Assembly: GCA_033442325.1 (NCBI GenBank)
Contig: JAWQFM010000004.1
Location: 67,629 to 108,996 of the forward strand
DNA: 41,368 nucleotides
Direction: 5' to 3'
Origin: Salpingoeca rosetta
Taxonomy: Eukaryota > Protista > Choanoflagellata
Both the position numbers and the translations under genes were made by a program. Shown piece after piece: positions 2,374 to 38,617 of this stretch. Below the pieces are notes generated by a model, which searched no databases, had not been told where the DNA came from, and was given only the letters and a program-made list of their open reading frames with translations. How positions within the stretch are numbered: the stretch's first letter is position 1; every line of letters starts with the position of its first letter.

Positions 2374-5300
2374 ATGTCCGGCGGAGAGAAGAGAGCAAGG
2401 GAGGAGGTGGAGGCGTTGCTGGCGCAGACGAAGGTGAAGGATGGGGTGAAGAACAAGATCAGGGCCATCGCCAACAACACGTGTCCGGGGGGAATAGAGT
2501 GAGTGCAAAAGCAACCAAAACGACGTGTTGCAACATGCATGCATGTGTTGGACACTAGGCCACAAGGACACTTCTTGTGGTTGTACTCGTGCTTATTCTC
2601 CCCCTCCCTCTCTGCTTGGCTTGTCCTTGTGTTGCAATGGGTGTGGTGTGGCTTGCTGTTGGGTGTTCACGTGTGCGTGTCCTGTCCCCTCGCACCGCCT
2701 GGACACATCAACAGAGAGAGAGTGTGTGTGTGTGTGTTTGTGGCAGGTTGTGACTGACACCCTCATGTTTTTGCTGTCTCGATCCTCAGTCTTCTTGCTC
2801 ATTTCATGACACACACCATTTGAAATTACAGCTTGGGTGGTTATGGCCTCGGCGACATTGGGGCGCGTGCGGTGGCCGAGGCGCTCAAGGACAACACCTG
2901 CCTCGAAACGCTCGAGTGCGTGGTGATGATGAATCTGCATCGTGTGATATGCATGGTTGATTGGGGTGGCGGTGTTGCACGTTGCATCCCTTTCTCCTCC
3001 CCTGCTTGCGCATGTTTGGACGTGTGTTCACCTTCGCTCCCTGCGGTTCTTGTGTGCCTGCACAGCCTGGCAGTCAATTCCATCGGCGATGAGGGCGCTG
3101 TGGCGTTGGCGGAGATGTTGAAGCACAACACGACCCTCAAAATACTCAAGTGAGTGTGTACACGCACACATGCACATGTATGCTGCGTCACTGCCGTTGC
3201 ACCTAACCACGTGCACATGTGTGGTCGATGACTGTGTTGCCACCCACAACAATCATCATCACGCACGCACTCACTCTTCCTCATCCATGTGGCATCATCG
3301 CCCTATGTGGCATCATACCTCTTGACAGCCTGAACAACAATTCCATCGGCGATGAGGGCGCCGTGGCGTTGGCGGAGATGCTGAAGCACAATATGACCAT
3401 GACATGGCTCCGGTGAGTGTGTACACGCACACATGCACATGTATGCTGCGTCACTGCTGCTGCACCTTATCACGTGCACATGTGCACATGTGTGGATTGA
3501 TGACTGTGTTGCCACCCACAGCAATCATCACTCACTCTTCCTCACCCATGTGGCATCATCGCCCTGTGTGGCATCCACCATACCGTCTTGACAGCCTGGA
3601 ACGCAATTCCATCGGCGATGAGGGCGCCGTGGCGTTGGCGGAGATGCTGGAGCACAACACGACCATGACATTGCTCGCGTGAGTGTGTACACGCACACAC
3701 ACACATGTATGCTGCGTCACTGCCGTTGCACCTTTATCACGTGCACATGTGTGGTTGATGACTGTGTTGACACCTACAACAATCATCATCACTCACTCAC
3801 TCACTCTTTCTCATCCATGTGGCAACATCGCCCTGCGTGGCATCATACCGTCTTGGCAGCCTGAGTGAGAACTCCATCGGCCCTGAGGGCGCCGTGGCGT
3901 TGGCGGAGATGCTGAAGCACAACACGACCCTCACAGCACTCGAGTGAGTGGAAGCTCCTCTTTGAAATGTGTGTCTTTAGGCGCTTCTTCTGCAATACCC
4001 ATGTGCAGATGGAGGCACTGCAAGCCACGCATGATGTCTGTGCGACTTGCTTGTTTGACCAACAAATGCTTCCATCCTTCATATGTGCCACAAGTGCTGC
4101 CACATCCTGTGCAATTTGCATTTGCCCCCTTTGCTTCCGCCATTGTGACTTCAATGTCGTAGGACCTGATGTGCGAGCGAGTCCGCGTGCACGTGGTCCA
4201 TCTGCAACCCACTTTCATCCGTGACACTGACACGTGTTGCTTGCCCACCCGTTCCCCTGCTCTTCCAACATGCATTTCTTGCCACTTGCAGCTTGGATAA
4301 CAACTCCATCACCCCGGTTGGCGGTGCGGCGCTGGGTGCCGCACTGGACCAGAACCGCACGCTGGAAGAACTCTGGTTTGTCGATTGCGTTGCGCCTGCC
4401 TCATGAACGCCTGTGTCCTGTTGTGGATTTGTGTGACCAATCGCCACTCTTTTGAGTGCACGCCACACTGTGTGTTCCTCTCTGCTTGCTTGCATTTCTC
4501 CACAACCCTAACCACCAACCCTCCTGACTCACGCACCGCACTTGCTGTTTGTTCCCAACCACACGCTACCACCACGTGTCCTCGTTCAGCATCGAGAAGA
4601 ACTCCACCGCCACCGCCCGCGCCTTTGGTGCCGCGCTGCCCGTCGACCGAGAACTCAGCACAGACTGGTCAGTCAACGCGTGCTTCCACTCTAGTCATTT
4701 GCTCCCTGCCATCTCTCGACCCTTCTCCTCACGCACACATGCTGCGTGGTACTTGCGTGCACATTTCACGTGGGATCACAGGTATGATGACGATGGGGGC
4801 CAGGCCGCCTTTAACGAAGCACGCGAGGAGCAGAAGCGGCAGCATGAGCAACTGTTTGCCGCCTGCAGGGATGGCGACACTCCAGCTGTCACGTCCCTCA
4901 TCGAACAGGACAATGCAGATGTCAACCAACAGGACAAGCAGGTGTGTTCATTATGTGTGTGTGTGTGCTGTGCTTGTATGTGAACGGCGCTCGCTCATGG
5001 TTGCACCGGCCGTGCGTTCGTTTCCAACAGATCCTCACCACACGTGCCATGCCCCTTGCTGCCCCCACCCATCCACAGGGCGACACGCCACTGCACGTTG
5101 CCTGCAGGCACAACCAGCCCGCCGTCGTGGAGCTGCTCATGAAGAAAGATGCAGACACTGCCGTCAAGAACAAGAAGGTGTGCTTCGCGTCGTGTGGCTG
5201 TTTCTGAAGACGTGACACAACTGTTTCTTTGCTTTGTGCTGTGTCCTCCCCCTCTCCCTGCTTCCCTCCTTCCTCAACTCATGCGTTTTACCTTTGCAAC

Positions 5301-5975
5301 ACACGCAGGGAGAGAGGCCCTATGATGTGGCACAGGCCAGCGGTCATACTGCCATCACCAGCATCCAAGGGCTGAAGCCAGGCGGCAAGCCTTTGGAGCA
5401 ACCACAACAGCAACAGCAGCCAAAACAAGAGCCACCTGCGCCCACTCCTGCCGCCGGACCGAAGCAAGAAGAACAAACAGCGCAAGACGTGAGTGATTTG
5501 ACAAGTGCTTGCCAGCAACGCACAAGCAAATGCATCACGTCACCCATGCCATTCCTTCATCACGCTCTCCGTGGTCTCGTATCAAGCATAATCATGTTGT
5601 CTCACACAACCATCACCAGCACCACCATCAGCAGCAGCCCGAGCAGGCGCGCAGGAAGCGTCTCCAGCAGCGCATGCGGGAGGTCATAGCACGCTTCAAC
5701 GCGACCATGGCGGGCAGGGCCAAACTCATCTTCATTGGTCAGGGGCGCGCCGGGAAGACCAGCACGTTCCACTCGCTCATGGGTCACATGTTCAACAAGC
5801 ATGAGCACTCCACCCTTGGCGCCGCCTCAACCGACCTCGCCGTCATTGTCGAATCAATGGACGTTCACGACTGGCAGGTGTGTACCCTTGTCTGGTGCGA
5901 GCATGTGATGTGTGCGACGCATGGGTGTGAAGAGAGGTGGTGGTTGACACGATCATCCCCTCGCACAAGCGTTCA

Positions 5976-6042
<67 letters not shown>

Positions 6043-9000
6043 CCTTTGCAGGAGCTGGATGCGGAAATCTCGGAGCTGATGCGCAGTCTCTGCGGAACGG
6101 CGCTGGCGCAGGAATCGGGCGTGGATTGGGAGATGAAGCAGGCGATGATGAAGGCGAAGGCCGACTTGGAGAGCCGCGTTGCCCAGCACCAACAGCAACA
6201 GCGGCAGCAGGAAGCCGAGAAGGCAGAGAAAGCAACGGCTGCCAAGCAGAAGCAGAAGCAGTTACAGAATGCAAAGGAGACGCGGCCACGTCCATCCTCC
6301 CGCACGTCGCCAGCGACTGTCCCCAAACCCACCAAGGCATCTCATGACTCAGCATCTGCATCCAAGAAGCAGGCCACCCTGAACCCTTCGAGCCAATGTG
6401 ATGCTGCTGCCCGCAATCACAACAACACCGCCACCGCCACGACCGGCATGTCTGCTGAGGACATGGAGAAAGCGATCAAGGAGTTCAACGTGGACGCCGT
6501 CATGGGCGAGGGCAAAGCACGGGTCACGTTCAAGATCTTTGACCTGGGTGGCCAGTCCACCTTCTACATCTTTCACCCTTTCTTCCTCACAGAGTGAGTT
6601 CAAGTTATGTGCGTGCATGCGTGTGTGTCTGTGTGTTTGAGTGTGTGTGTGTGTGTGTGCGTGTGTGTATGTGTCTGTGTGTGCGTGAGTACGGCTGCGT
6701 GCAGTCCCTCCACCACCTCTCCTCCATTCACCTCTCCCTTCATCACCGCACACCCACACCAGGTACGCGGTGTACCTGCTGGTGTTCTCCATGGAGGACC
6801 TGCTTTACCAAGACAAGAGCAAGCGGGCTGAATCGTGGGAGTTTATGGAGCACTGGCTCTCCTCCCTCCACCTCCACGCCAAGGGTGCACCCGTCCTCAT
6901 CGTCGGCACCTTCGCTGATGTGGTCAGCAAGCGTAAGCAGCACGAGAACATATCCCGTGACATCCACAGTCGCCTGCGCCACAACCCGGCCTTCCCTTCC
7001 GTCATCCACAACGACAAGCATGGTCTGTGGTTCTGGCCCGTCGACAACACCAAGTCTATCAACGACACCATGATCCAGGACCTGCGCCAGACCATCTCCT
7101 CCACAGCACTGGCGCAGGAGTACGTGAGTCAGGAGGTGGCTGTGCCATACCTCCACCTCTACGACAAGCTCAACGCCATCGCCCGCGACGAGCAACGGCC
7201 GCTGCTCACGTTTGATGAGGTGGTGGCGATTGCGCGCACATGTGGGCTGCGCACACGTGAGGAGACGAGGGCCTGCCTCCAGTTCCTGCACCTGTACTCC
7301 ATGGTGCTGTACTATGACACCGTGCCAGGCATGGAGGACTATGTGATCCTGAGTCCGCAGTGGGCGGTGGACATGATGACGCGCGTCATCCGAAACTTTG
7401 ATCTGCATCACGACGTGCGTGATGGTGAGGCGAGGGCCGTTGGTGCGCAGCTGTGGGACGACCTGGTTGACCGCGGCATCCTGCACCGTCGCCTGCTGGA
7501 TGTGCTGTGGAAGGACTTGGAAGGTGGCACGATTGAGCCCTTCCTCCAACTCATGATGGAGTACGGGTTGTGTGTCGACTACACGGCACCAATGGTGCGG
7601 CTGTTCGGCCCTCAACAGCAACAACAACACCACCAACAACACCAACAGTACCTCGTCCCAGCCATCCTGCCGATGACGCTGGAGGATGAACAGGCGTCGT
7701 CGTCGGTGACTCTGAGCACGGCAGCAGCACAGCAGGCCAATCCATACGCTGGATATGAGGAGAAGACAGCCTACGTCGCCTTCAGCCTGAGGGAGTTCAA
7801 GAGGGGTGTAAGCGCCAAGATTGCAGACACGCAGCAAGCCTCCTTCCTGCCAGAGGGCCTGTTCCCGATGGTTCTGGCACGCGTGATGGCACACATGCAG
7901 CATGGTGCAACGGAACCGCCCATGTTGAGCCGGACAGACGCCGTAATCTTCATGGACGTGGCTGAGATCGAATTACAGCTCGTGCCGGCTGTTGGCGGCA
8001 TCAAGATCAAGGTCATGACTGCACGTCCTCGCACGCTGCTGCACATGCTGTACGACACCATCACAACAGCTGTCACGCAGCGCTACCCCGAGCTCAAGGC
8101 CACGTTGCTGCTGCCATTTAATGACACGAGACTGCTGTTCTTCGAGGATGTGCACACCCACCACACGAACAAGAAACCGCTTCGCGTTGGCCGCTCACAG
8201 CTGCTGTCACCAGGGGATCTGGTCGCCAAATATGGTCCACTCTTGCCAGTTATGGGTCAGCAGGACAAATACGATGCCTTCATCAGCTACAGGTGGGACA
8301 TGTGTGTGTGTGCGTGTGTATGTGTGTGTGTGTGTGTGCATGAATGTATGGCGCGAACTGGGTGTCTTTCCTTCCCTCTCTCTTCCTTTCTTATTTCGAC
8401 ACTGACCACCACGTCACAGGCAACGCGGCAACCGGGGTTTGGTGATGACATTGTACCCAAAGTTGGAGCAGCACGGACTGGTAACCTTTGTGGACGCCAA
8501 CAACTTGGAGACAGGCGTCAACTTCAAGCACGCGTGCATGACAGCCCTGCACAACAGTACTGTCGCCTGTCCCGTCGTTTCCGTGGGTGCCATCCATCAG
8601 ATGCGCTCGCTCGGCCACACTGACACGTGCGATAACGTCTTGTTGGAGTGGATGGCCATGCTGGAGCTGCAGCAGCTTGCTCGCCAGCATCCAGACAAGG
8701 TCCACCTCCGCCGCATCGTTCCGCTCTTCCTCGGCAGTGGCTGGCACGACAGCAGTCACCATGTTATGAGCAGGGCAGAGGTGAGCGAGTACGACTCGTT
8801 TGACCGCCTGAAGCGGCTGGCAACGAAGTTGCCGGACGTTGTGAGCAAGAACACGACGTCAGCGCTGGATCAGTACTTTTCACAGGTGCTGCGATTGCAG
8901 CCACCTCAGCAACACAAGAGCGTGCGGGAGGCGGTGTTGTCGCTGTTTGACATTGACGCCGTGGTTGCGATGGATGCCGGTGTGGACCGCACGTCGCAGC

Positions 9001-9548
9001 TGCGCGACATTGCGGAGAAGATTCGCCAGGTCGTCGTCTCTGCCAGGAGCGAGGAGCAAGCAGCTCAGGGGCCAGCAGCTGCACGTCGTTCCACGCAGGT
9101 ATAGTTTTGTGGCTGTGTGTTCTTGAGTGGTTGTGTGTGTGTGTGTGTGTGTGTGCGTGTGTGTATGCAGGCGCACTCCTTTCTCTCTTCCGCTTGGCAC
9201 GCGTGCTGTGTCTCACTCAGCCCCTCTAACTTGTCTGCCGTGCAGTCATCTTCCTCGACCTCCACCGCTACAACTCCTGTTACACCACCACCTACCACCC
9301 CATCGCCCTCTTCCACCTCGTCGCCGTTTGAGCCCGAGTTACTTGAATGGCTCAAACGCCACTCGCTGCTGCCGCACGTCGAGTCGGCACTGGTGGAGCA
9401 CGGCATCGACTCCCTGGAGGTGCTGGTCGTGTCCATACAAGAGGGTGACCTGACCAAGGAGGTACTCAGGGAAGCCGGTGTGAAAATTGGGCCGGCAATC
9501 AAGCTGATTCGGGAGGCAAAGAAGTGTGACGTGGACAGTTCTTCATAG
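2374..9548 (+). CDS. Roco-family protein, LRR(RI-like)-ankyrin-ROC GTPase-COR-TIR-SAM; 16 exons
   Basis: Exons: 2374-2498, 2832-2915, 3066-3149, 3329-3412, 3595-3678, 3860-3943, 4292-4375, 4590-4667, 4782-4941, 5079-5177, 5309-5488, ~5620-5877, 6052-6593, 6763-8292, 8420-9098, 9246-9548; GT/AG and phase-compatible. Motifs: LRR (NSIGDEGAVALAEMLKHNTTL), ANK (GDTPLHVACRHNQPAVVELLM), P-loop KLIFIGQGRAGKTS, G3 FKIFDLGGQ, G4 VLIVGTFAD, COR (ACLQFLHLYSMVLYY...VILSPQWAVDMMTRVI), TIR (YDAFISYRQ...TFVDANNLETG...DNVLLEW), SAM (LLEWLKRHSL...LVEHGIDSLEVL...LREAGVKIGPAIKL). Confidence 0.92.
3066..3950 (+). repeat. Tandem array of four 84-nt LRR exons with three near-identical intervening introns (period 263-266 bp)
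   Basis: Exon starts at 3066, 3329, 3595, 3860. The three introns all begin gtgagtgtgtacacgcacaca...catgtatgctgcgtcactgc and end ...tggcatc...atacc(g)tcttg(a/g)cag. Confidence 0.95.
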
Positions 9549-10070
9549 TGCGACGCCTTATCGGCCCTGTTACCTCTCCTGTTTGTCGTTGTTGTTCTGC
9601 GCTGAGTTATTTCTGTTCTCTTTCGTCCTGACGTTCTTCGCCTTTTCATCAATTCCATACGCCCGACTGTCGTAGCTTCTGCCTCCTGTTTCTCCTCACC
9701 TCACTCCTTGCCGACGTGGCGCAAAGATGCGCTTTGCCCTTCTACTTGTACACTGTTCTGCACCTTCCGTGCTTTCGTTGCCCCTCCTGTGTCATGCCGC
9801 CACTTGTTGCTTCACCTTTGTTCCACAATACATCTTCCTCCGTTTCAAAACACACATGCACCACAGCCTGCTTGCCATCACATTCCACGTCAGCCATCCA
9901 CACACCACCACACACTCACAACTGTGAACGCGTCAACTGACTTTGATGTGAATGTGTACATGAACATGACATGTCAACACAGCAAATGCATAACCCTTCC
10001 GCCACCCAACATGATAACCCCCCCCCCCCAGCCACCTGATCACACACGCTCAGGCCTCCTTCCACTGTCC

Positions 10071-12281
10071 TTAGAAGCGGTTCACGAGCGAGACATCAGG
10101 CCACCGCCAATGGTAGTTTGTTGAGTAGCAGTTGCGCAGCACAACGCAGCCAATGTCTGACAGCCCGTGCATGTTGTCAAAGGCGCAACTCTGCAGAACA
10201 AGCCGCTGAATGCCTTGGAAGCAATCAAATTCCAAGATGGCACACTTGTGAAGGTGGCAATTGAATACTTCTCGACAGCCTGTGATTGACAAGCTGCCAG
10301 GACCATCCGACACAACATTGGAGGGGGCAATAATGGGCACATGCTGAGCAGGAGCGGCCCTCACAGTCAATTCGTCAAGCAAAAGCGTGCCAATGGAGGT
10401 GAAGCCAACACGCCCACAACAACTGTGTAGCGAGGCCCTGTGGCAGCGCGCAATGTCTTGATCGAGCGTGCAGGACGTGAGGCGAAGGTATTGTCGGTCA
10501 GAAAGCAGGTGGATGCCGTGCATTGGGTACTGGAATCGCCCGTGGAGAGTCAACGACTGCACCGCCGGCCCAATCCACTCGCAGTGAAGCTCGCCTTTGA
10601 CAAGGCCATGCAGCTCTTTCACACAGGGCGGCACCGGCCCATCCACGTTGACGCCATCGACACAAACGTGCACGTGGTCAGGGATACCATTCAGGGCACT
10701 GACATTCCTCACACAGTCCTTGAGCACGAGCTTGTCGGTGCGCCGGCCGAGGTCCACAAGAAACTCGCGTGACAACACTCTTCGAAACAACTTGAGTGCC
10801 AGTACATTCGCGTGCACAAAGTCGGGCAGCTGCGGCATCGTGAAGGGTGTTTCATCGGCAATCACAATTCTGTCAACGCGAGTGGGGCAAGTGAACGTCT
10901 TCACTTTGGATCGCAGTCGCAACTCAATGTGGGTAGCGTTGGGCAAATGCAACAGTCTTGGCACTTCCAGCATGTGTGAGAGCGTAATACGGGTGCCATC
11001 GAGTTTGTCATTCTGCAACTGCACCTGACGGAGGCTGAGGTGTTGTGCTGCGGTCACCACCGCATCATCGCCGCTCAGGTGTGCGCCAACAATGTCGAGC
11101 TTTTCCACCCCGAGCAGCGGCGACAGGTCCAACGAGCGGCCGTACAAGCGAGCAAGCCTGATTTCCGGAATGCCCGCGTTCAACATGCCCAAGTCGGAGA
11201 TGGAGGTGCTGTCGCTCAGTTCAAACCGCTGCATGTGTTGAATATCGCCACGAAGGGTCCGCTGATTTCGAGCACACCACGTGACACGTTTCACGTCATG
11301 GATTGTAACGTGGCCAATCTCAGTGGATTGGATGTCAAGGAAATCGATGTGACACGCGCTGAGCGACTCCAACGGACTTTGAATGACCAGGTTCACGTCA
11401 ACGCCGCGTGAGTTGGCGAGCAGCGACGTGCGGAGCTCATGCCACCGATCAGCATCACCCTGGCACATGAATTCAGCCGTGAGCGAAAACAGTGCTGGGG
11501 CGAACGCAGCGGTGACTGTGACCCTGTCACCAACGTGCTGTTGCTGCTTCTGAGAGTGCTGTGGTTGGGCGCTTCGGGTGCTTGTCCCTCCTGCATCTGT
11601 GGACGTGCTGGTGCCTCCTTCTTGCTTGCGTGCATCTGCACCGTGCACACTGCTGTCGTGCTCACTGGCGTCGAGTGCCTGATTCACGTCTGCGGCCCAC
11701 GACTCGACGTCTTCAAGGGACGTGTACGTCACGTGTCCAGAGCGTGCGAACCGATGCCAGAAGCTCTGCGTCTGTGGAGGAGACTGGAGCCTGGAGCGGA
11801 GAAAGGTGCACGTGCTTTTCCACGCCACACCCAGCCAACAATACGCGAGGAAGCGGTTCTCCAACCACACGACGACATGCGCAGTGTCGTCTTCTTGTAA
11901 AGGGAGCGCGGTGGTTTGCATGGCCATCGCGAGGGCCATCATTGCCGAGGTGGTCGCTGCGTGGGCGGGCACAAGAAGGTCCCGTTGAAACACGTCAACC
12001 CAGTGCTCAGTCGTTCGGCTCTGGCGATTCCACACGTTTGTGCTCTTTGTGAACACGGTGGACAGGCACCACTTGGGCATGGCCCACGGCAGGTCATGGT
12101 ACAGCTCGCGGCAAGTCAACATGAGGTTGAAGTACGCGCGCGCCACGTCCCGAGGAGGGCACTCCTGGGGCTTGCTGTCCAGCTGTCCCCCGAACACCCC
12201 GGTGCCCTTGTTCTTTGCTGCCTGCTCTGCTTCCAACACCAACGTCTCCGCCACCAGCGCCCACGCTGCGCCGTCGTTCAT
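10071..12281 (-). CDS. Intronless 736-aa hypothetical protein with degenerate C-terminal leucine-rich repeats
   Basis: 2.2-kb uninterrupted ATG-to-stop ORF free of microsatellites. The C-terminal ~400 aa has LRR-like periodicity (MQRFELSDSTSISDLGML, LDLSPLLGVEKLDIVG, TDKLVLKDCVRNVSALNGI, IQRLVLQSCAFDNMHGLSDIGCVVLRNC). Confidence 0.8.
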   Translation of the reverse strand: MNDGAAWALVAETLVLEAEQAAKNKGTGVFGGQLDSKPQECPPRDVARAYFNLMLTCRELYHDLPWAMPKWCLSTVFTKSTNVWNRQSRTTEHWVDVFQRDLLVPAHAATTSAMMALAMAMQTTALPLQEDDTAHVVVWLENRFLAYCWLGVAWKSTCTFLRSRLQSPPQTQSFWHRFARSGHVTYTSLEDVESWAADVNQALDASEHDSSVHGADARKQEGGTSTSTDAGGTSTRSAQPQHSQKQQQHVGDRVTVTAAFAPALFSLTAEFMCQGDADRWHELRTSLLANSRGVDVNLVIQSPLESLSACHIDFLDIQSTEIGHVTIHDVKRVTWCARNQRTLRGDIQHMQRFELSDSTSISDLGMLNAGIPEIRLARLYGRSLDLSPLLGVEKLDIVGAHLSGDDAVVTAAQHLSLRQVQLQNDKLDGTRITLSHMLEVPRLLHLPNATHIELRLRSKVKTFTCPTRVDRIVIADETPFTMPQLPDFVHANVLALKLFRRVLSREFLVDLGRRTDKLVLKDCVRNVSALNGIPDHVHVCVDGVNVDGPVPPCVKELHGLVKGELHCEWIGPAVQSLTLHGRFQYPMHGIHLLSDRQYLRLTSCTLDQDIARCHRASLHSCCGRVGFTSIGTLLLDELTVRAAPAQHVPIIAPSNVVSDGPGSLSITGCREVFNCHLHKCAILEFDCFQGIQRLVLQSCAFDNMHGLSDIGCVVLRNCYSTNYHWRWPDVSLVNRF

Positions 12282-14545: not shown

Positions 14546-15590
14546 CTATGTGTGCGCTGTTGCTGGTGCTTGTAGGTTTGTTAAAGCATCAAACAGCTGC
14601 TTGTGCGCCGCAATCTTGTGTGTCCTGCACAGGTAAACAAAGGCATGGAGTGAGCAGGAACAGCATACGTGTATGATGTGGCCTGGAACAGCCTCAGGGA
14701 TGTGATTGGCGACACAACACAACACAACACAACACAACAAACAAACAGCACCACCACCACAGCACCACCTCACCCCTTGAAGTCGAGGTCGACGATGACA
14801 AGTTTCGCCAACACGGCGCCGTCTGCAACGCGATACGACCCGGCCATCGCCCCCGCACGTGCACATGCACGGCTTTCGGTGTCGTGTGTCGGCTCGAGAG
14901 GCGAGCAGAAGGAAACCAACACGCTGCAGTCCTTAAACGCTGCAGCTCTCAAGTGATCGAGCATCAACCACGCTGGTGACACCATCGCTTCCTCACCATC
15001 ACCATCATCATCATGTTGCTGTTGTTTCGCGACCTTGGTCACCTGCTCCCCATCATCATCGGATAGTTCATGTGCACGCTTACCGCCGTCAACACTCGCT
15101 TTCGCCCCTTCCTCCTCCTCCTTCTTCATTCCTTCTCTTCCACGATCACCGTCACCACCACCACCACTACTGCTCGCGAGCGTGTGTTCCCGCCATGTGT
15201 TGACATCGTCTTGAGTGATGACACCACGTGTCGCCGTTCGCGCCGCATCCGCAGCAGCAACAGCAGCAAACGACCGGTCCACAGGGCACCAAGACAACGA
15301 CGATGTTGATGCTGATGTTGTTGACGATGTTGATGTTGGTGTTGATGTTGATGATGGGCGAAGACGGGGAGGTGATTTGGAGGACGCCAAAGAACGTGTC
15401 ACCGCTGGCTGCGCATGGTGTGCCCCGTGTTGGGTCCTGAGCCACGACAGCACACCAGAGGTCGACAGCACCTCTTGTAAGAGCGGTGCCAGCCCGGCGG
15501 CGAGGCAGTGGACGGAAGCTGCTTCGGTCATCGCACCACGACCACCACGACCGCCACCATCACCACCACCATCATCATCAACACCACCAC

Positions 15591-15622
<32 letters not shown>

Positions 15623-16906
15623 CCATCCTGTTGTTGTTGTGGTGGCGACGATGCTGACACGGCGCGGTGCAGAACAGGCGTGGAGGCGGTGGCGTGTGCA
15701 GTGAGGAGACGGAGGTTGTTCTGGGGTGTCTGCAGCAGTTGTAGGATGGCTTCACGCTGTAACTGTGCATCCTGTTCAGGACATGAACGCAAACGCACAG
15801 GGTTGTCAAGCGTAATATGGTCAGAAACACAACGAACGTTTTGAAGCTACACACACTCACGTACACACACACACACTCTCTCTCTCTCTCGCTCTCTCAC
15901 GAACACACACAGTCACTCACACATTCACTCACTCACTCACGTTCCCCCCCCCCCACACACACACGCACACTGCGTGCGTTGCTGAACAGGCGGATTGGGC
16001 AGTATTTGGAGACAGAGGTCCATTTGCCGTTGGCAAGCTTGAGGTGCTGGTGACAACAGAAGCGGCACCAGCGCTGCTCGCTCCGGGCGTGGCACGTGGT
16101 GTCGACGCGAGGTGGAAGTCGAAACACGTCGTCGCAGCTCTTCGGCTTCAGCTCAATGGCAAAGTATGCGTGGTGACACGCAGGAACACGCGTTGCCAGC
16201 AGCCAATCGAGCGCCGCCTGCCCGCCTTTGCCAAGAACGTCAGTCCCAGATTCCCAGAGCCGAAACGCGCACGCGGGACACGACCCCATATCTGGCATCA
16301 AAATTGCGCCCGCACCGCACAGCGCTCGCGTATCAACATTAACAAAGCCTTGGCCTACAGGTACATCCTGCTCCAACAGCTGCAGCCCATCCAAAAAGGT
16401 CTGGGGCAGATCCAAATGCACCTGTACAAACACACACGCGTTTGCATTCATGCTGGTGAGGCACACCATACATGCTTTCTCAGGACATGATTGTCAAAGA
16501 CACAACAAACAAGCGACCCAGGCATTCGACGAAAGAGCACACACACACACACACACACCACACACACCACACGCACACATGCGCACACATGCGCACACAC
16601 GACACTCGCACACACACACATGCGCACACACGACACTCACACACGCACTCACGCAATCAGTTGTACCTGTGGACACGCCCAGGGCGAGGGAACGAGGCGG
16701 GAGAGTGTTTCATGGAACCTTTGCTGCACATGGCGTTCATCCAAACATTGTGTCTGATCTCCTTCCTTCTCCAGACGCCGCAATCGCAGGGCGCACAGCC
16801 GAAGAGCAGCGAGCTCGGGTTCAGCTCCAGCATACCTCAGCACGACGTTTGCACCGCCCACACCACGCACGCGCCACGGCCCACTGGGCAGCCGTGATGG
16901 ACACAT
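14546..16906 (-). CDS. IPK1: Inositol-pentakisphosphate 2-kinase
   Basis: Spliced exons give WRVRGVGGANVVLRY (N-terminal G-loop), AIELKPK, CRFCCHQHLK, YCPIRLFS, QNNLRL, AAAFKDCSVLVSF and IVDLDFKG, the conserved IPK1/IPPK motifs. The last exon ends ...THKIAAHKQLFDALTNLQAPATAHT* at 14546. Confidence 0.88.
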
Positions 16907-20362: not shown

Positions 20363-21189
20363 NNNNNNNNNNNNNNNNNNNNNNNNNNNNNNNNNNNNNN
20401 NNNNNNNNNNNNNNNNNNNNNNNNNNNNNNNNNNNNNNNNNNNNNNNNNNNNNNNNNNNNNNNNNNNNNNNNNNNNNNNNNNNNNNNNNNNNNNNNNNNN
20501 NNNNNNNNNNNNNNNNNNNNNNNNNNNNNNNNNNNNNNNNNNNNNNNNNNNNNNNNNNNNNNNNNNNNNNNNNNNNNNNNNNNNNNNNNNNNNNNNNNNN
20601 NNNNNNNNNNNNNNNNNNNNNNNNNNNNNNNNNNNNNNNNNNNNNNNNNNNNNNNNNNNNNNNNNNNNNNNNNNNNNNNNNNNNNNNNNNNNNNNNNNNN
20701 NNNNNNNNNNNNNNNNNNNNNNNNNNNNNNNNNNNNNNNNNNNNNNNNNNNNNNNNNNNNNNNNNNNNNNNNNNNNNNNNNNNNNNNNNNNNNNNNNNNN
20801 NNNNNNNNNNNNNNNNNNNNNNNNNNNNNNNNNNNNNNNNNNNNNNNNNNNNNNNNNNNNNNNNNNNNNNNNNNNNNNNNNNNNNNNNNNNNNNNNNNNN
20901 NNNNNNNNNNNNNNNNNNNNNNNNNNNNNNNNNNNNNNNNNNNNNNNNNNNNNNNNNNNNNNNNNNNNNNNNNNNNNNNNNNNNNNNNNNNNNNNNNNNN
21001 NNNNNNNNNNNNNNNNNNNNNNNNNNNNNNNNNNNNNNNNNNNNNNNNNNNNNNNNNNNNNNNNNNNNNNNNNNNNNNNNNNNNNNNNNNNNNNNNNNNN
21101 NNNNNNNNNNNNNNNNNNNNNNNNNNNNNNNNNNNNNNNNNNNNATCATCATCACCATGATCATCACACCACCACCATCATCATCATCA

Positions 21190-29526: not shown

Positions 29527-30520
29527 TAGTTTGTGTGTGTGTGTGTGTGAGTTTGTGTGTATGTGAGAGAGAGAGAGAGCACAGCGTGTAGGAGTGTGTG
29601 AGTGTGTCTGCGAATGTGCGCAAGTTTGGGTTTGTGATCGTGCAAGCGAGGGGGCATGGCATGACTGCATCTCAATCATGTGCGTGCGTGCGTGTGGTCT
29701 CACGAGATTGAAGAAGAACTGCAGGCGCTCGTTTGCAACATTGATGCACATCTGCTCAAACCTGACGAAGGACACATGCAACACGCACAGGACGAATGCA
29801 TGGCGTGATCAACACAGCAAAGCCGCAGGACAAGAAGCATGATAGATGAAAACGCACATGCACACACGAACACACACACACACATGAACACAATACACAT
29901 CACACAGTACGCAAACGCACACAAACACACCCATGCACACACGAACACAATACACAACACACACAAGCATACACAACACATAAACATACACAACACACAC
30001 AACAAACATACACAACACAAACACAACTCAAACAACCAAACAGCGCACCCGTTGGTCTTGAAGTTTTCGAAGCCAAAGATGTCGAGGATACCGATATGGA
30101 GCTCGTCGCCGTCGAGTGCGGCCGACGAGTGCAGCATCGTGTCCATGCGCGTGACCAGCCACTCAAACAGCGCATCGTACGCGCACTTTGCCAGCGCCTC
30201 CACCCCCTGATGGCTCTTGTAGACGGTGTTCGGCTTTGTGTAGCGTTCGCCGTGCACAAAGTACTGTGTCTCGACCATGTGCTGGCTCATCGCTGCCGCG
30301 TTGACACCAAGCAGCCCGGCAACCTTCTCCACCACCTGTGATGATGACGCAGAGTGGGGCGGGGGGATGTGATATGTATGAAGGTGGTGATGAGGGGACG
30401 AGGATACGGAGGGATGAAGGAATGAAGAAATGAAGACGAAGGGATGAAGGAGCTGGTGGTGGTGCTTACACAACGCACACACACAGCGAAACACACACAC
30501 ACACGCACGCACGCACGCAT

Positions 30521-30595
<75 letters not shown>

Positions 30596-31062
30596 GCGGG
30601 CGTGCACCTGTGGATCCTGCATCAACTGCCCCAACACACCGTGGGCAGGCGAATCCTGCATGTTCTACGAGAGGAAACGACACGAGGGCGTGAGAATGAG
30701 GAGTGTGAGAATGAGGAGGAGGGAGGAAGAGGAGGAAGAGGATGGGAAAGTACACGAAGTACACGACAATCGCGCATATTCGAGGCAGCAGACACACACA
30801 CACACACACACGACACATAAATCACACACAACACGACCCACGCACAATGACGCTGTGTACATGCCCTGAGCAGCGGGGCTCGTTGACGGCGGCCGCGGGT
30901 GTGCCATCACCTGCACAAACAAACGCACGCACATCTTCATCGGGCTNNNNNNNNNNNNNNNNNNNNNNNNNNNNNNNNNNNNNNNNNNNNNNNNNNNNNN
31001 NNNNNNNNNNNNNNNNNNNNNNNNNNNNNNNNNNNNNNNNNNNNNNACGACGACGACGACAC

Positions 31063-37888: not shown

Positions 37889-38617
37889 TGTTACACCAAA
37901 CACACGCGCACGCACGGGTGCAGGTGATGCTGATGGCGATGTTGTTGCTCGTGCGTGTGTCTGTGTGTGTGTGCTCATGTGTGTGTGTGTGTGTGTCTGT
38001 GTCTGTGTGTATGTGTGTGTGCGTCTGTATGTCTGTGTGTGTGTGCCCGTGTATGTGTGTGTGTCTGTTCATCGGGTACACTGCTTCGCCATGGTTCTCC
38101 TTCACGAGTGTGCTGTTGATTTGGGGCGCAGTTGTAAGTTCATTAAACAACGTTAGGCCAGCCACTGCTGACAGGCAAGCAAGGCACGTGCACACACACA
38201 CACANNNNNNNNNNNNNNNNNNNNNNNNNNNNNNNNNNNNNNNNNNNNNNNNNNNNNNNNNNNNNNNNNNNNNNNNNNNNNNNNNNNNNNNNNNNNNNNN
38301 NNNNATTCCCCGTTGCGAACTGGTGGGGTGAGCGCTCCGGCGTGGAAGACTCGTCATATGGTTGTGTACCATGTGTATCATTTCCAGTGAACCGTCTAAC
38401 TGAGCAGCACAATCCTGCATACCGCTAGTTGCTTTTTGACACAGCTTATACTTACTCTCTCTGCTTGCAAAAATGATAAAAGTCAAATTGTCTCTTTTAC
38501 ATTCTTGGTCTTCGTCCATAAACGCACGTTTGACGGAGATACAGGATGTTGCGGTTCTTCGACAGACGACGGCGGCGACTCACGCGGTCTTTCACACACA
38601 CGCACACACACACACAC

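Follow-up and report, generated by a model that had tools for sequence, protein, structure and literature searches.

A nucleotide and dimer cycle of the Roc-COR module is established for the C. tepidum Roco protein and for LRRK2. Brown-algal leucine-rich repeat (LRR)-ROCO genes have been proposed to encode pathogen receptors on the grounds that each LRR is encoded by a single phase-2 exon, that these exons are shuffled, and that the concave face of the repeats is under positive selection (PMC3341825, PMC11378527). Proteins that join a Roco module to a TIR domain have been catalogued in silico in Aplysia (PMC9334734), and a TPR-ROCO-TIR protein is on record in the red alga Chondrus (PMC11378527). 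In the accessible part of a survey of choanoflagellate immunity genes, no canonical NLRs are reported and Roco-TIR proteins go unmentioned (Richter et al. 2018, PMC6040629), and nothing relevant on Roco together with choanoflagellate or Salpingoeca was found in the searchable literature. Here, we analyzed a 41,368-nt stretch of the genome of the choanoflagellate Salpingoeca rosetta (hereafter, the window; contig C4, positions 67629-108996, in an assembly of 55.4 Mb and 68 contigs), which contains PTSG_11207, a 16-exon gene on the plus strand (2374-9548). Profile and fold searches assign to its product, in this order, seven ribonuclease inhibitor (RI)-type LRRs, ankyrin repeats, Roc, COR-A/B, TIR, and SAM. 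The reading that we favor, at about even confidence, is that PTSG_11207 is an NLR-like immune or non-self receptor and one member of a rapidly diversifying family.

Each of the closest described systems shares part of this architecture. LRRK2, LRRK1, and C. tepidum Roco have a Roc-COR module with a T[F/H]xD G4 motif and carry LRRs and ankyrin repeats N-terminal to Roc, but the ankyrin repeats precede the LRRs in LRRK2 whereas the LRRs come first in PTSG_11207, which also departs from LRRK2-type Roco proteins in a TIR-SAM output instead of kinase and WD40 domains and in an insert of ~150 residues within Roc. SARM1 resembles PTSG_11207 in its TIR, by sequence as well as fold, in the retained catalytic glutamate, and in a SAM adjoining the TIR. 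However, SARM1 has an ARM domain and two SAMs before the TIR, whereas in PTSG_11207 one SAM follows a TIR that is about 80 residues longer, that Foldseek places nearer to plant NLR TIRs, and whose regulator is LRR-ANK-Roc-COR. Plant TIR-NB-ARC-LRR receptors (TNLs; RUN1, RPP1, ROQ1, and L6) likewise combine an LRR sensor, a nucleotide switch, and a TIR in an expanded family with variable LRRs, but PTSG_11207 has a Roc-COR GTPase rather than a STAND ATPase, the reversed domain order, and an added SAM. Brown-algal LRR-ROCO genes have in common with it the LRR-Roc-COR core, phase-2 one-LRR exons, duplication and shuffling of these exons, and selection on the concave face; their LRR exons measure 72 bp (23-residue LRRs), in contrast to 84 bp (28-residue RI-type LRRs) in PTSG_11207, which further adds ankyrin repeats, TIR, and SAM. 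Since the two lineages are unrelated, this likeness is probably convergent. Finally, the Aplysia and Chondrus proteins also unite Roc-COR and TIR in one polypeptide, some of them with LRRs, but they are described as domain lists with other accessory domains (Mbt, EF-hand, Death, and TPR), and family expansion, selection analysis, and a SAM are not reported there. PTSG_11207 is a Roco family member with a TIR of the glutamate-bearing class, and is neither an NLR nor a SARM1 orthologue; by analogy, it plausibly works like both.

Gene model and domain architecture

The plus strand between 1900 and 10100 was translated and inspected for frame-preserving GT-AG introns, which yielded a stop-free frame extending from an ATG at 2374 to a stop codon at 9546-9548, with GT-AG introns throughout. 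The translation is identical to the database protein P0151 (PTSG_11207, "hypothetical protein"; 1,485 aa), and the gene had thus been annotated before, as hypothetical only. The original prediction, which was made from the letters of the sequence, had the domain order, the 16 exons, and the coordinates right, as well as the guess that the host is a unicellular relative of animals. The donor of intron 14 (GTGGGA) is at 8293, a position that follows from the junction of FISYR with QRGN in P0151 and all paralogues. The exons and the features that they encode are as follows.

2374-2498, plus strand: exon 1, start codon and 41-residue N-terminal cap before the LRRs
2832-2915, 3066-3149, 3329-3412, and 3595-3678, plus strand: exons 2-5, LRRs 1-4, one per exon, phase 2
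3860-3943, 4292-4375, and 4590-4667, plus strand: exons 6-8, LRRs 5-7, one per exon, phase 2
4782-4941, 5079-5177, and 5309-5488, plus strand: exons 9-11, ankyrin repeats, then a Q/P-rich linker
5620-5877, plus strand: exon 12, linker and N-terminal part of Roc (E 2.1e-6), with the P-loop GQGRAGKT at 5737-5760
6052-6593, plus strand: exon 13, low-complexity Roc insert of ~150 residues, then G3 motif FDLGGQ at 6538-6555
6763-8292, plus strand: exon 14, C-terminal part of Roc, with G4 motif IVGTFAD at 6899-6919
About 7148-7669 and about 7835-8122, plus strand: exon 14, COR-A and COR-B by Pfam (COR-B weak)
8267-8290, plus strand: exon 14, first TIR strand, KYDAFISY in translation
8420-9098, plus strand: exon 15, remainder of the extended TIR, with E1235 at 8646-8648 in the motif DNVLLEW
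9246-9548, plus strand: exon 16, S/T/P-rich linker, SAM at about 9330-9533, stop codon at 9546-9548

The N-terminus (MSGGEKRAREE...) is common to most close paralogues. On P0151, Pfam returned LRR_6 in five stretches (92.8 bits), Ank_2 (45 bits) and Ank (39.6 bits; E 1.4e-7 with exon 10 by itself), Roc in two stretches (60.7 bits), COR-A directly after Roc (64.1 bits, and 64-67 bits across queries; cut-off 35.3), a weak COR-B (21.6 bits, under the cut-off of 27), and TIR_2 (32.9 bits on the whole protein; cut-off 28). Six of the seven LRR exons are 84 bp long (28-residue units) and one is 78 bp long (26-residue unit), all of them in phase 2. The 28-residue units and the LRR_6 match identify these LRRs as RI type, whose repeats have 28-29 residues. 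The best solved relatives of the Roc-COR module are LRRK2 (E 3e-10) and C. tepidum Roco, with alignments that run from Roc into COR. Neither NACHT nor NB-ARC gave a Pfam match on P0151 at E≤0.01. Pfam found no ARM domain on P0151 either, and the single SAM is placed after the TIR. UniRef names PTSG_11207 and its paralogues "non-specific serine/threonine protein kinase"; because Pfam detected no kinase domain, this name looks like an automatic transfer from LRRK-type rules.

The Roc motifs of PTSG_11207 are intact, namely G1 (GQGRAGKT), G3 (FDLGGQ), and G4 (IVGTFAD; compare THLD in LRRK2). All S. rosetta paralogues that were inspected keep their general forms (G1, GxxxxGKT; G3, DxxGQ; G4, T[F/H]xD), as do most of the relatives compared from other choanoflagellates. 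Judged from these motifs, PTSG_11207 Roc-COR would bind or hydrolyze GTP and go through a nucleotide-dependent dimer cycle. Roc is divided by a Q/K/A-rich low-complexity insert of ~150 residues (6052-6540) that splits the Pfam match, has exonic RNA read depth, and brings the distance between G1 and G3 to about 200 residues. Set beside the Roc of LRRK2, this insert probably occupies the beta2-beta3 loop. Spacings of about 150-245 residues between G1 and G3 were found across the S. rosetta family, in S. infusionum, and in one metagenomic relative; the long spacing, kept in all S. rosetta paralogues and in these two relatives, thus marks a clade.

Transcription was assessed with the raw reads of two stranded RNA-seq runs of 2026 over the region 3700-9650. 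All exons in this region are covered, read depth drops in the introns, and the first mates lie nearly all on the minus strand, which in the usual library type corresponds to a plus-strand transcript. The 16-exon model was borne out in part by these data. Among the matches listed, junction reads support 6 of the 15 introns (6, 8, 9, 11, 13, and 15), including joints from 3943 to 4292 (intron 6) and from 6593 to 6763 (intron 13) and the removal of intron 15 (9099-9245; 35 and 57 reads plus one contig). A loose read end at 5878 is consistent with intron 12, and introns 7, 10, and 14 were taken from the public annotation and from the exon structure conserved in eleven paralogues. For intron 11, the reads indicate a donor at 5489 and an acceptor at 5631 (6 and 13 reads), whereas the annotated one lies 12 nt upstream, at 5619. 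Use of the site at 5631, with exon 12 starting at 5632, drops four residues (HHHQ) of the poly-H/Q linker, and it may be an alternative acceptor or a product of cross-mapping between paralogues. More than half of the mapped reads match PTSG_11207 at 99% or better. Expression of exactly this copy is probable, but not exclusive, because many reads derive from paralogues. Circular or aberrant RNA was considered and rejected, as the "back" joints within 3860-3943, the joints from 4364 to 4590/4597 with extra letters, and a joint from 5420 to 7622 were attributed to cross-mapping of paralogue and poly-Q sequences.

TIR and SAM output domains

Residues 1140-1485 were modeled with AlphaFold2 on the basis of 61 relatives, with a mean pLDDT of 89. 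The top Foldseek matches of the modeled TIR are those of the plant NLRs RUN1, SNC1, RPP1, L6, and ROQ1 (E 2e-6 to 3e-4; TM 0.65-0.72). Exhaustive comparison with VIA-align placed the SARM1 TIR first (Z 13.9; root mean square deviation [rmsd], 2.4 Å; 140/140 aligned); RPP1 and RPS4 scored Z 13.7, and SARM1 is the best TIR match by sequence (E 0.003 with the single sequence and 1e-7 with a profile). Across 61 Roc-COR-linked TIRs, S18 and W97 (alignment numbering) are invariant, and Y13, D14, F16, Y19, R20, D91, L94, and E96 are conserved in at least 90%. Alignment position E96 corresponds to E1235 of PTSG_11207, within DNVLLEW, which the model sets in the first turn of the helix after strand C. 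E1235 is thereby a candidate catalytic glutamate, predicted to lie where catalytic TIRs carry theirs; its equivalence to SARM1 E642 comes from a manual alignment.

Biochemical evidence on this family comes from a preprint in which TIR domains of many eukaryotes were expressed in E. coli (bioRxiv 10.64898/2026.04.20.719644). Specifically, entry 33 of its Table S4 is an S. rosetta TIR (residues 1034-1255 of a 1,352-aa protein; catalytic residue 1118) recorded as active and positive for cyclic ADP-ribose (cADPR). All active TIRs of that study lost activity upon mutation of the catalytic glutamate, and S. rosetta is named among the cADPR producers. Most assayed TIRs made cADPR without depletion of NAD+, the S. 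rosetta TIR not being among the named exceptions. The architectures of the assayed proteins are drawn, with LRR, Roc, and COR listed in the figure legend. Short-motif look-ups and the coordinates identified the assayed TIR as that of the paralogue P0157 (PTSG_12359), which is 89% identical to the PTSG_11207 TIR over a gap-free alignment in which E1118 corresponds to E1235. PTSG_12359 belongs to the same family and has the same exon structure, Roc, COR, SAM, and DNVLLEW glutamate, but it lies at another locus (contig C13, some 26 kb away from the end), has a smaller number of LRRs and a truncated annotated N-terminus, and differs from PTSG_11207 in its SAM and LRR surface residues; the assay concerned its isolated TIR alone. 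By analogy with this paralogue, we infer that the PTSG_11207 TIR cleaves NAD+ and synthesizes cADPR. The sensor-switch-effector logic first proposed for this gene agrees with the intact G1, G3, and G4 motifs of Roc, the retained TIR glutamate, and the cADPR-positive TIR of the paralogue.

TIR and SAM could instead be protein-protein adaptor modules of the MyD88 type, with no enzymatic activity in vivo. The TIRs of MyD88, TIRAP, and IL-18R-beta also reach Z 12.8 against the model, and other TIR genes are present in S. rosetta. However, the catalytic glutamate is conserved, its mutation abolished activity in all active TIRs assayed (bioRxiv 10.64898/2026.04.20.719644), and a paralogue TIR is recorded as making cADPR; we consider an adaptor role very improbable.

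The SAM is borderline by profile in PTSG_11207 (SAM_2, 20.0-20.7 bits versus a cut-off of 20.5), and 11 of 18 C-termini from the family matched SAM_2, the best of them at E 4.5e-6. A family SAM profile gave no match among PDB sequences, and the assignment was settled by fold search with VIA-align, in which the final 68 residues of the model (model residues 275-342) match the SAM of p73 (Z 8.4; rmsd, 1.8 Å; 61/61) and those of EphA2/SHIP2 (Z 7.9; 33% identity). Both the TIR and the SAM of the original prediction thus stood up to profile and structure searches. The SAM has diverged more than any other folded domain; its identity among the eight closest copies is 66%. The paralogues P0167 and P0168 have CaaX-like C-termini after the SAM (...CALM and ...CLLM), which suggests possible prenylation and membrane anchoring of these two proteins; PTSG_11207 ends in ...CDVDSSS instead.

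Diversification of the LRR cassettes

A unit of 266 bp comprising an exon and an intron occurs in 3.3 tandem copies over 3075-3950, with 83% identity, and through duplication of such units full-length close paralogues have come to carry between 5 and 8 LRRs. Ratios of nonsynonymous to synonymous substitution rates (dN/dS) were calculated pairwise and by domain with the Nei-Gojobori method, using the codons of ten close paralogues mapped from their genomic loci, with the following results.

N-terminal cap: dN/dS 0.84
LRR: dN/dS 0.80, dS 0.17
ANK: dN/dS 0.28
Roc, N-terminal part: dN/dS 0.27
Roc, C-terminal part, COR-A, and COR-B: dN/dS 0.17-0.24
TIR: dN/dS 0.24
SAM: dN/dS 0.28, dS 0.96

The LRR columns were divided by their position in the 28-residue unit, with x denoting the canonical solvent-exposed positions of LxxLxLxxN. 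At the x positions, dN was 0.61 and dS 0.36, which corresponds to a dN/dS of 1.69 (column-bootstrap 95% range, 1.12-2.84), as opposed to 0.44 (0.27-0.71) at the scaffold positions; two sets of disjoint pairs gave x-position ratios of 1.81 and 1.40, and no more than 3% of random six-position sets attained the observed ratio. Synonymous divergence varies strongly along the gene (dS: LRRs, 0.17; core, 0.3-0.4; SAM, 0.96), which argues for different histories of the two gene ends.

These figures bear on a second explanation, in which PTSG_11207 is a SARM1-like executioner of stress responses or cell death under nucleotide or metabolite control, its LRR-ANK part acting as an autoinhibitor or scaffold and its many copies being a by-product of duplication, with no selection for ligand diversity. 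Consistently with it, SARM1 is the best TIR match by sequence and VIA-align, a SAM accompanies the TIR as it does in SARM1, the low dS of the LRRs (0.17) suggests gene conversion, the overall LRR ratio of 0.80 stays under 1, and the copies lie near contig ends, probably in subtelomeric, duplication-prone DNA. However, purifying selection on the LRR scaffold combined with a ratio of 1.69 at surface positions is unlike relaxed constraint, and the domain order, the single SAM, and the lack of an ARM domain are unlike SARM1. An executioner of this kind appears quite unlikely to us.

The paralogue family and its genomic location

Searching the assembly with exon 14 recovered about 40 loci of 50-95% protein identity; the TIR exon gave about 40 matches, about 36 of which follow immediately after a Roc-COR match in the same orientation, and the SAM exon gave about 30. 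PTSG_11207 is thus not a single-copy gene, having about 36 linked paralogues with diversifying LRRs. The retrieved annotated S. rosetta proteins of the family number 21, the majority being LRR-ANK-Roc-COR-TIR. Along with the expansion, swapping of terminal domains was found. P0165 has an N-terminus with a Rab-like GTPase and ankyrin repeats, P0160 and P0004 have more LRRs and no ankyrin repeats, P0162 and P0168 have no LRR, and in P0003 a degenerate TIR-like region is followed by a PNP_UDP_1 phosphorylase/nucleosidase domain. The N-terminal G6PD_N domain of P0163 possibly stems from a fused gene model and was not counted as a domain swap.

Paralogues have their introns in common, as well as some 1.4 kb upstream of the gene, at 85-95% identity, and are therefore DNA-level duplicates. 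These shared introns and upstream homology led us to reject an origin by transposon capture or retrocopying. Identity between copies is mosaic along the gene. For instance, a paralogue on the same contig, 28 kb upstream of the window (C4:31000-39500), has 85-90% DNA identity in its LRR-ANK half and 72-77% in its Roc-COR-TIR half, a pattern that suggests recombination or gene conversion between subfamilies.

Given such a family, this particular copy might be a redundant or decaying duplicate without a function of its own. Near-identical paralogues are numerous, RNA reads cross-map between them, and a close copy at C30:57213 (P0161) has a broken TIR region, with three in-frame stops and an annotated protein that lacks a Pfam TIR. 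However, the 1,485-codon frame of PTSG_11207 is intact and holds all motifs, the core domains are under purifying selection, and over half of the mapped reads match this copy at 99% or better. We find this possibility scarcely credible. A stop codon noted in paralogue copies of exon 14 (one TGA) was dismissed as probably spurious, as the query ran 7 nt into the intron and a GTGAGT-type donor was read as a stop; in this region, the exons that encode the annotated paralogue proteins are uninterrupted.

All 13 copies of the clade at least 82% identical to PTSG_11207 lie 4-80 kb from a contig end, and the more distant copies are scattered. Telomeric (CCCTAA)n repeats are present at the starts of contigs C36 (1-1500) and C25 (1-600), and the C36 telomere is one of the contig ends near close-clade copies; ten other ends near such copies were inspected, and no (CCCTAA)n was found there. 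A subtelomeric position of the close clade is likely, but for lack of telomere repeats at those ten ends, most of its copies cannot yet be called subtelomeric.

Size, location, and variants of the family also bear on a third explanation, that PTSG_11207 detects cues, bacterial or environmental, by which feeding, rosette development, or mating is guided, with the same chain from LRR through Roc-COR to TIR and a developmental or behavioral output. S. rosetta responds to specific bacterial molecules. Its responses to bacterial cues are also mentioned in the literature (PMC8075586), the production of cADPR without NAD+ depletion by most assayed TIRs fits a messenger role (bioRxiv 10.64898/2026.04.20.719644), and a large variable family would also be suited to sensing diverse prey bacteria. 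However, the known developmental cues of S. rosetta are few compared with about 36 members, a dN/dS above 1 at binding positions together with a location near contig ends is more typical of arms-race genes, and swaps to a nucleosidase-type effector such as PNP_UDP_1 are typical of defense and cell-death systems. We regard a cue receptor as unlikely, although well worth keeping in view.

The arrangement of a TIR after COR extends beyond S. rosetta. It was found in S. infusionum, Didymoeca costata, Hartaetosiga balthica, and Mylnosiga fluctuans, in some cases with N-terminal LRRs, as well as in the chrysophyte Mallomonas and in many metagenomic contigs. Of the 150 best Roc-COR representatives, about 70 had a BLAST match to the TIR-SAM part of PTSG_11207, mostly just downstream of Roc-COR.

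Surroundings of the locus

No defense-related neighbors of PTSG_11207 were found nearby. The gene is followed, tail to tail, by an uninterrupted open reading frame of 736 codons (10074-12281, minus strand) with no Pfam match, which was not duplicated along with the paralogues, as their homology stops between about 9420 and 10150. Further neighbors (14773-15798 and 29703-30818, both minus strand) include a fragment of an inositol-pentakisphosphate 2-kinase (E 3.8e-8) and an exon encoding a myosin head (E 2.1e-18). The window has runs of N, possibly assembly gaps, at 20363-21144 (782 bases) and at 30947-31046 and 38205-38304 (100 bases each). Microsatellites of (TG)n/(CA)n type are frequent in the introns of PTSG_11207, for example at 5966-6049, 6606-6691, and 8295-8352.

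Discussion

The likeliest role of PTSG_11207 would be the recognition of non-self (bacteria, viruses, or their effectors) by a cytosolic receptor-like Roco protein, that is, by an NLR-like receptor based on a Roc-COR GTPase in place of a STAND ATPase. A ligand-gated, GTP-switched, cADPR-making receptor is, as an analogy with characterized Roco and TIR proteins, well supported; the immune role of the family is what we infer. In such a receptor, a variable ligand would be bound by the seven RI-type LRRs on their concave face, possibly with a contribution from the ankyrin repeats, as the diversifying selection at the x positions suggests. Ligand binding would be linked to whether Roc-COR holds GTP or GDP and to its alternation between dimer and monomer, in keeping with the intact G motifs and with what has been established for LRRK2 and C. 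tepidum Roco. By analogy with SARM1 and with the resistosomes of plant TNLs, the C-terminal TIRs would be brought together, with the SAM helping, and the assembled TIR would cleave NAD+ and make cADPR, as the 89%-identical TIR of the paralogue leads one to expect. More speculatively, this product or the loss of NAD+ might lead the cell to respond, for instance by letting in Ca2+ or by dying. S. rosetta has an ADP-ribose-activated TRPM2 channel (PMC6461439), which is a possible receiver of the TIR product.

Several points weigh against reading PTSG_11207 as a diversifying immune receptor. No family member is tied by experiment to infection, ligand binding, or cell death, and the cADPR assay, reported in a preprint, concerns the isolated TIR of a paralogue overexpressed in bacteria, which is neither PTSG_11207 nor a full-length protein. 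With regard to selection, the ratio observed at the x positions is reached by 3% of random six-position sets, pairwise Nei-Gojobori comparisons are not independent, and the position classes, which do follow the canonical motif, were chosen after inspection of the sequences. Moreover, dS is raised at the x columns (0.36 versus 0.135), so that mis-orthology of repeats or gene conversion may have inflated the signal. The proximity to contig ends may in part be an effect of assemblies breaking at repeated genes, the RNA reads cross-map among paralogues, and self-association of the SAM found no support in a complex prediction with two copies, which spoke neither for nor against it.

A broader version of the favored receptor reading would have S. 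rosetta deploy dozens of LRR-Roc-COR-TIR-SAM receptors, the youngest clade of which lies near chromosome ends; LRR cassettes would diversify their specificity, and cADPR from the TIR would act on a sensor such as TRPM2. We put this version forward tentatively, as a possibility somewhat more doubtful than not.

The original prediction held this architecture to be uncharacterized, which stands for the whole protein and for its family, both unstudied, but not for the parts. The preprint draws the architectures of the proteins that it assayed (bioRxiv 10.64898/2026.04.20.719644), and Roco-TIR proteins are listed for Aplysia (PMC9334734) and for a red alga (PMC11378527). The separate domains, the Roco-TIR fusion, and the assay of one paralogue's TIR are thus already on record, whereas the family as a whole, with its about 36 copies, contig-end clade, diversifying LRR cassettes, and SAM tail, was not found in the searchable literature.

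S. rosetta can be cultivated in the laboratory and edited genetically, which makes the receptor idea directly testable. Because the output of PTSG_11207 is an enzymatic TIR and not a kinase, the family would also offer a naturally simple read-out for the Roco biology of LRRK2. If the broader version of the receptor reading is true, S. rosetta would provide a further independent assembly of the receptor logic that joins LRR, NTPase, and TIR, beside those of plant TNLs and bacterial systems. How choanoflagellates sense intracellular threats is unclear, since the accessible part of the survey literature reports no canonical NLRs (PMC6040629), and the S. rosetta Roco-TIR family is a concrete candidate for this task.

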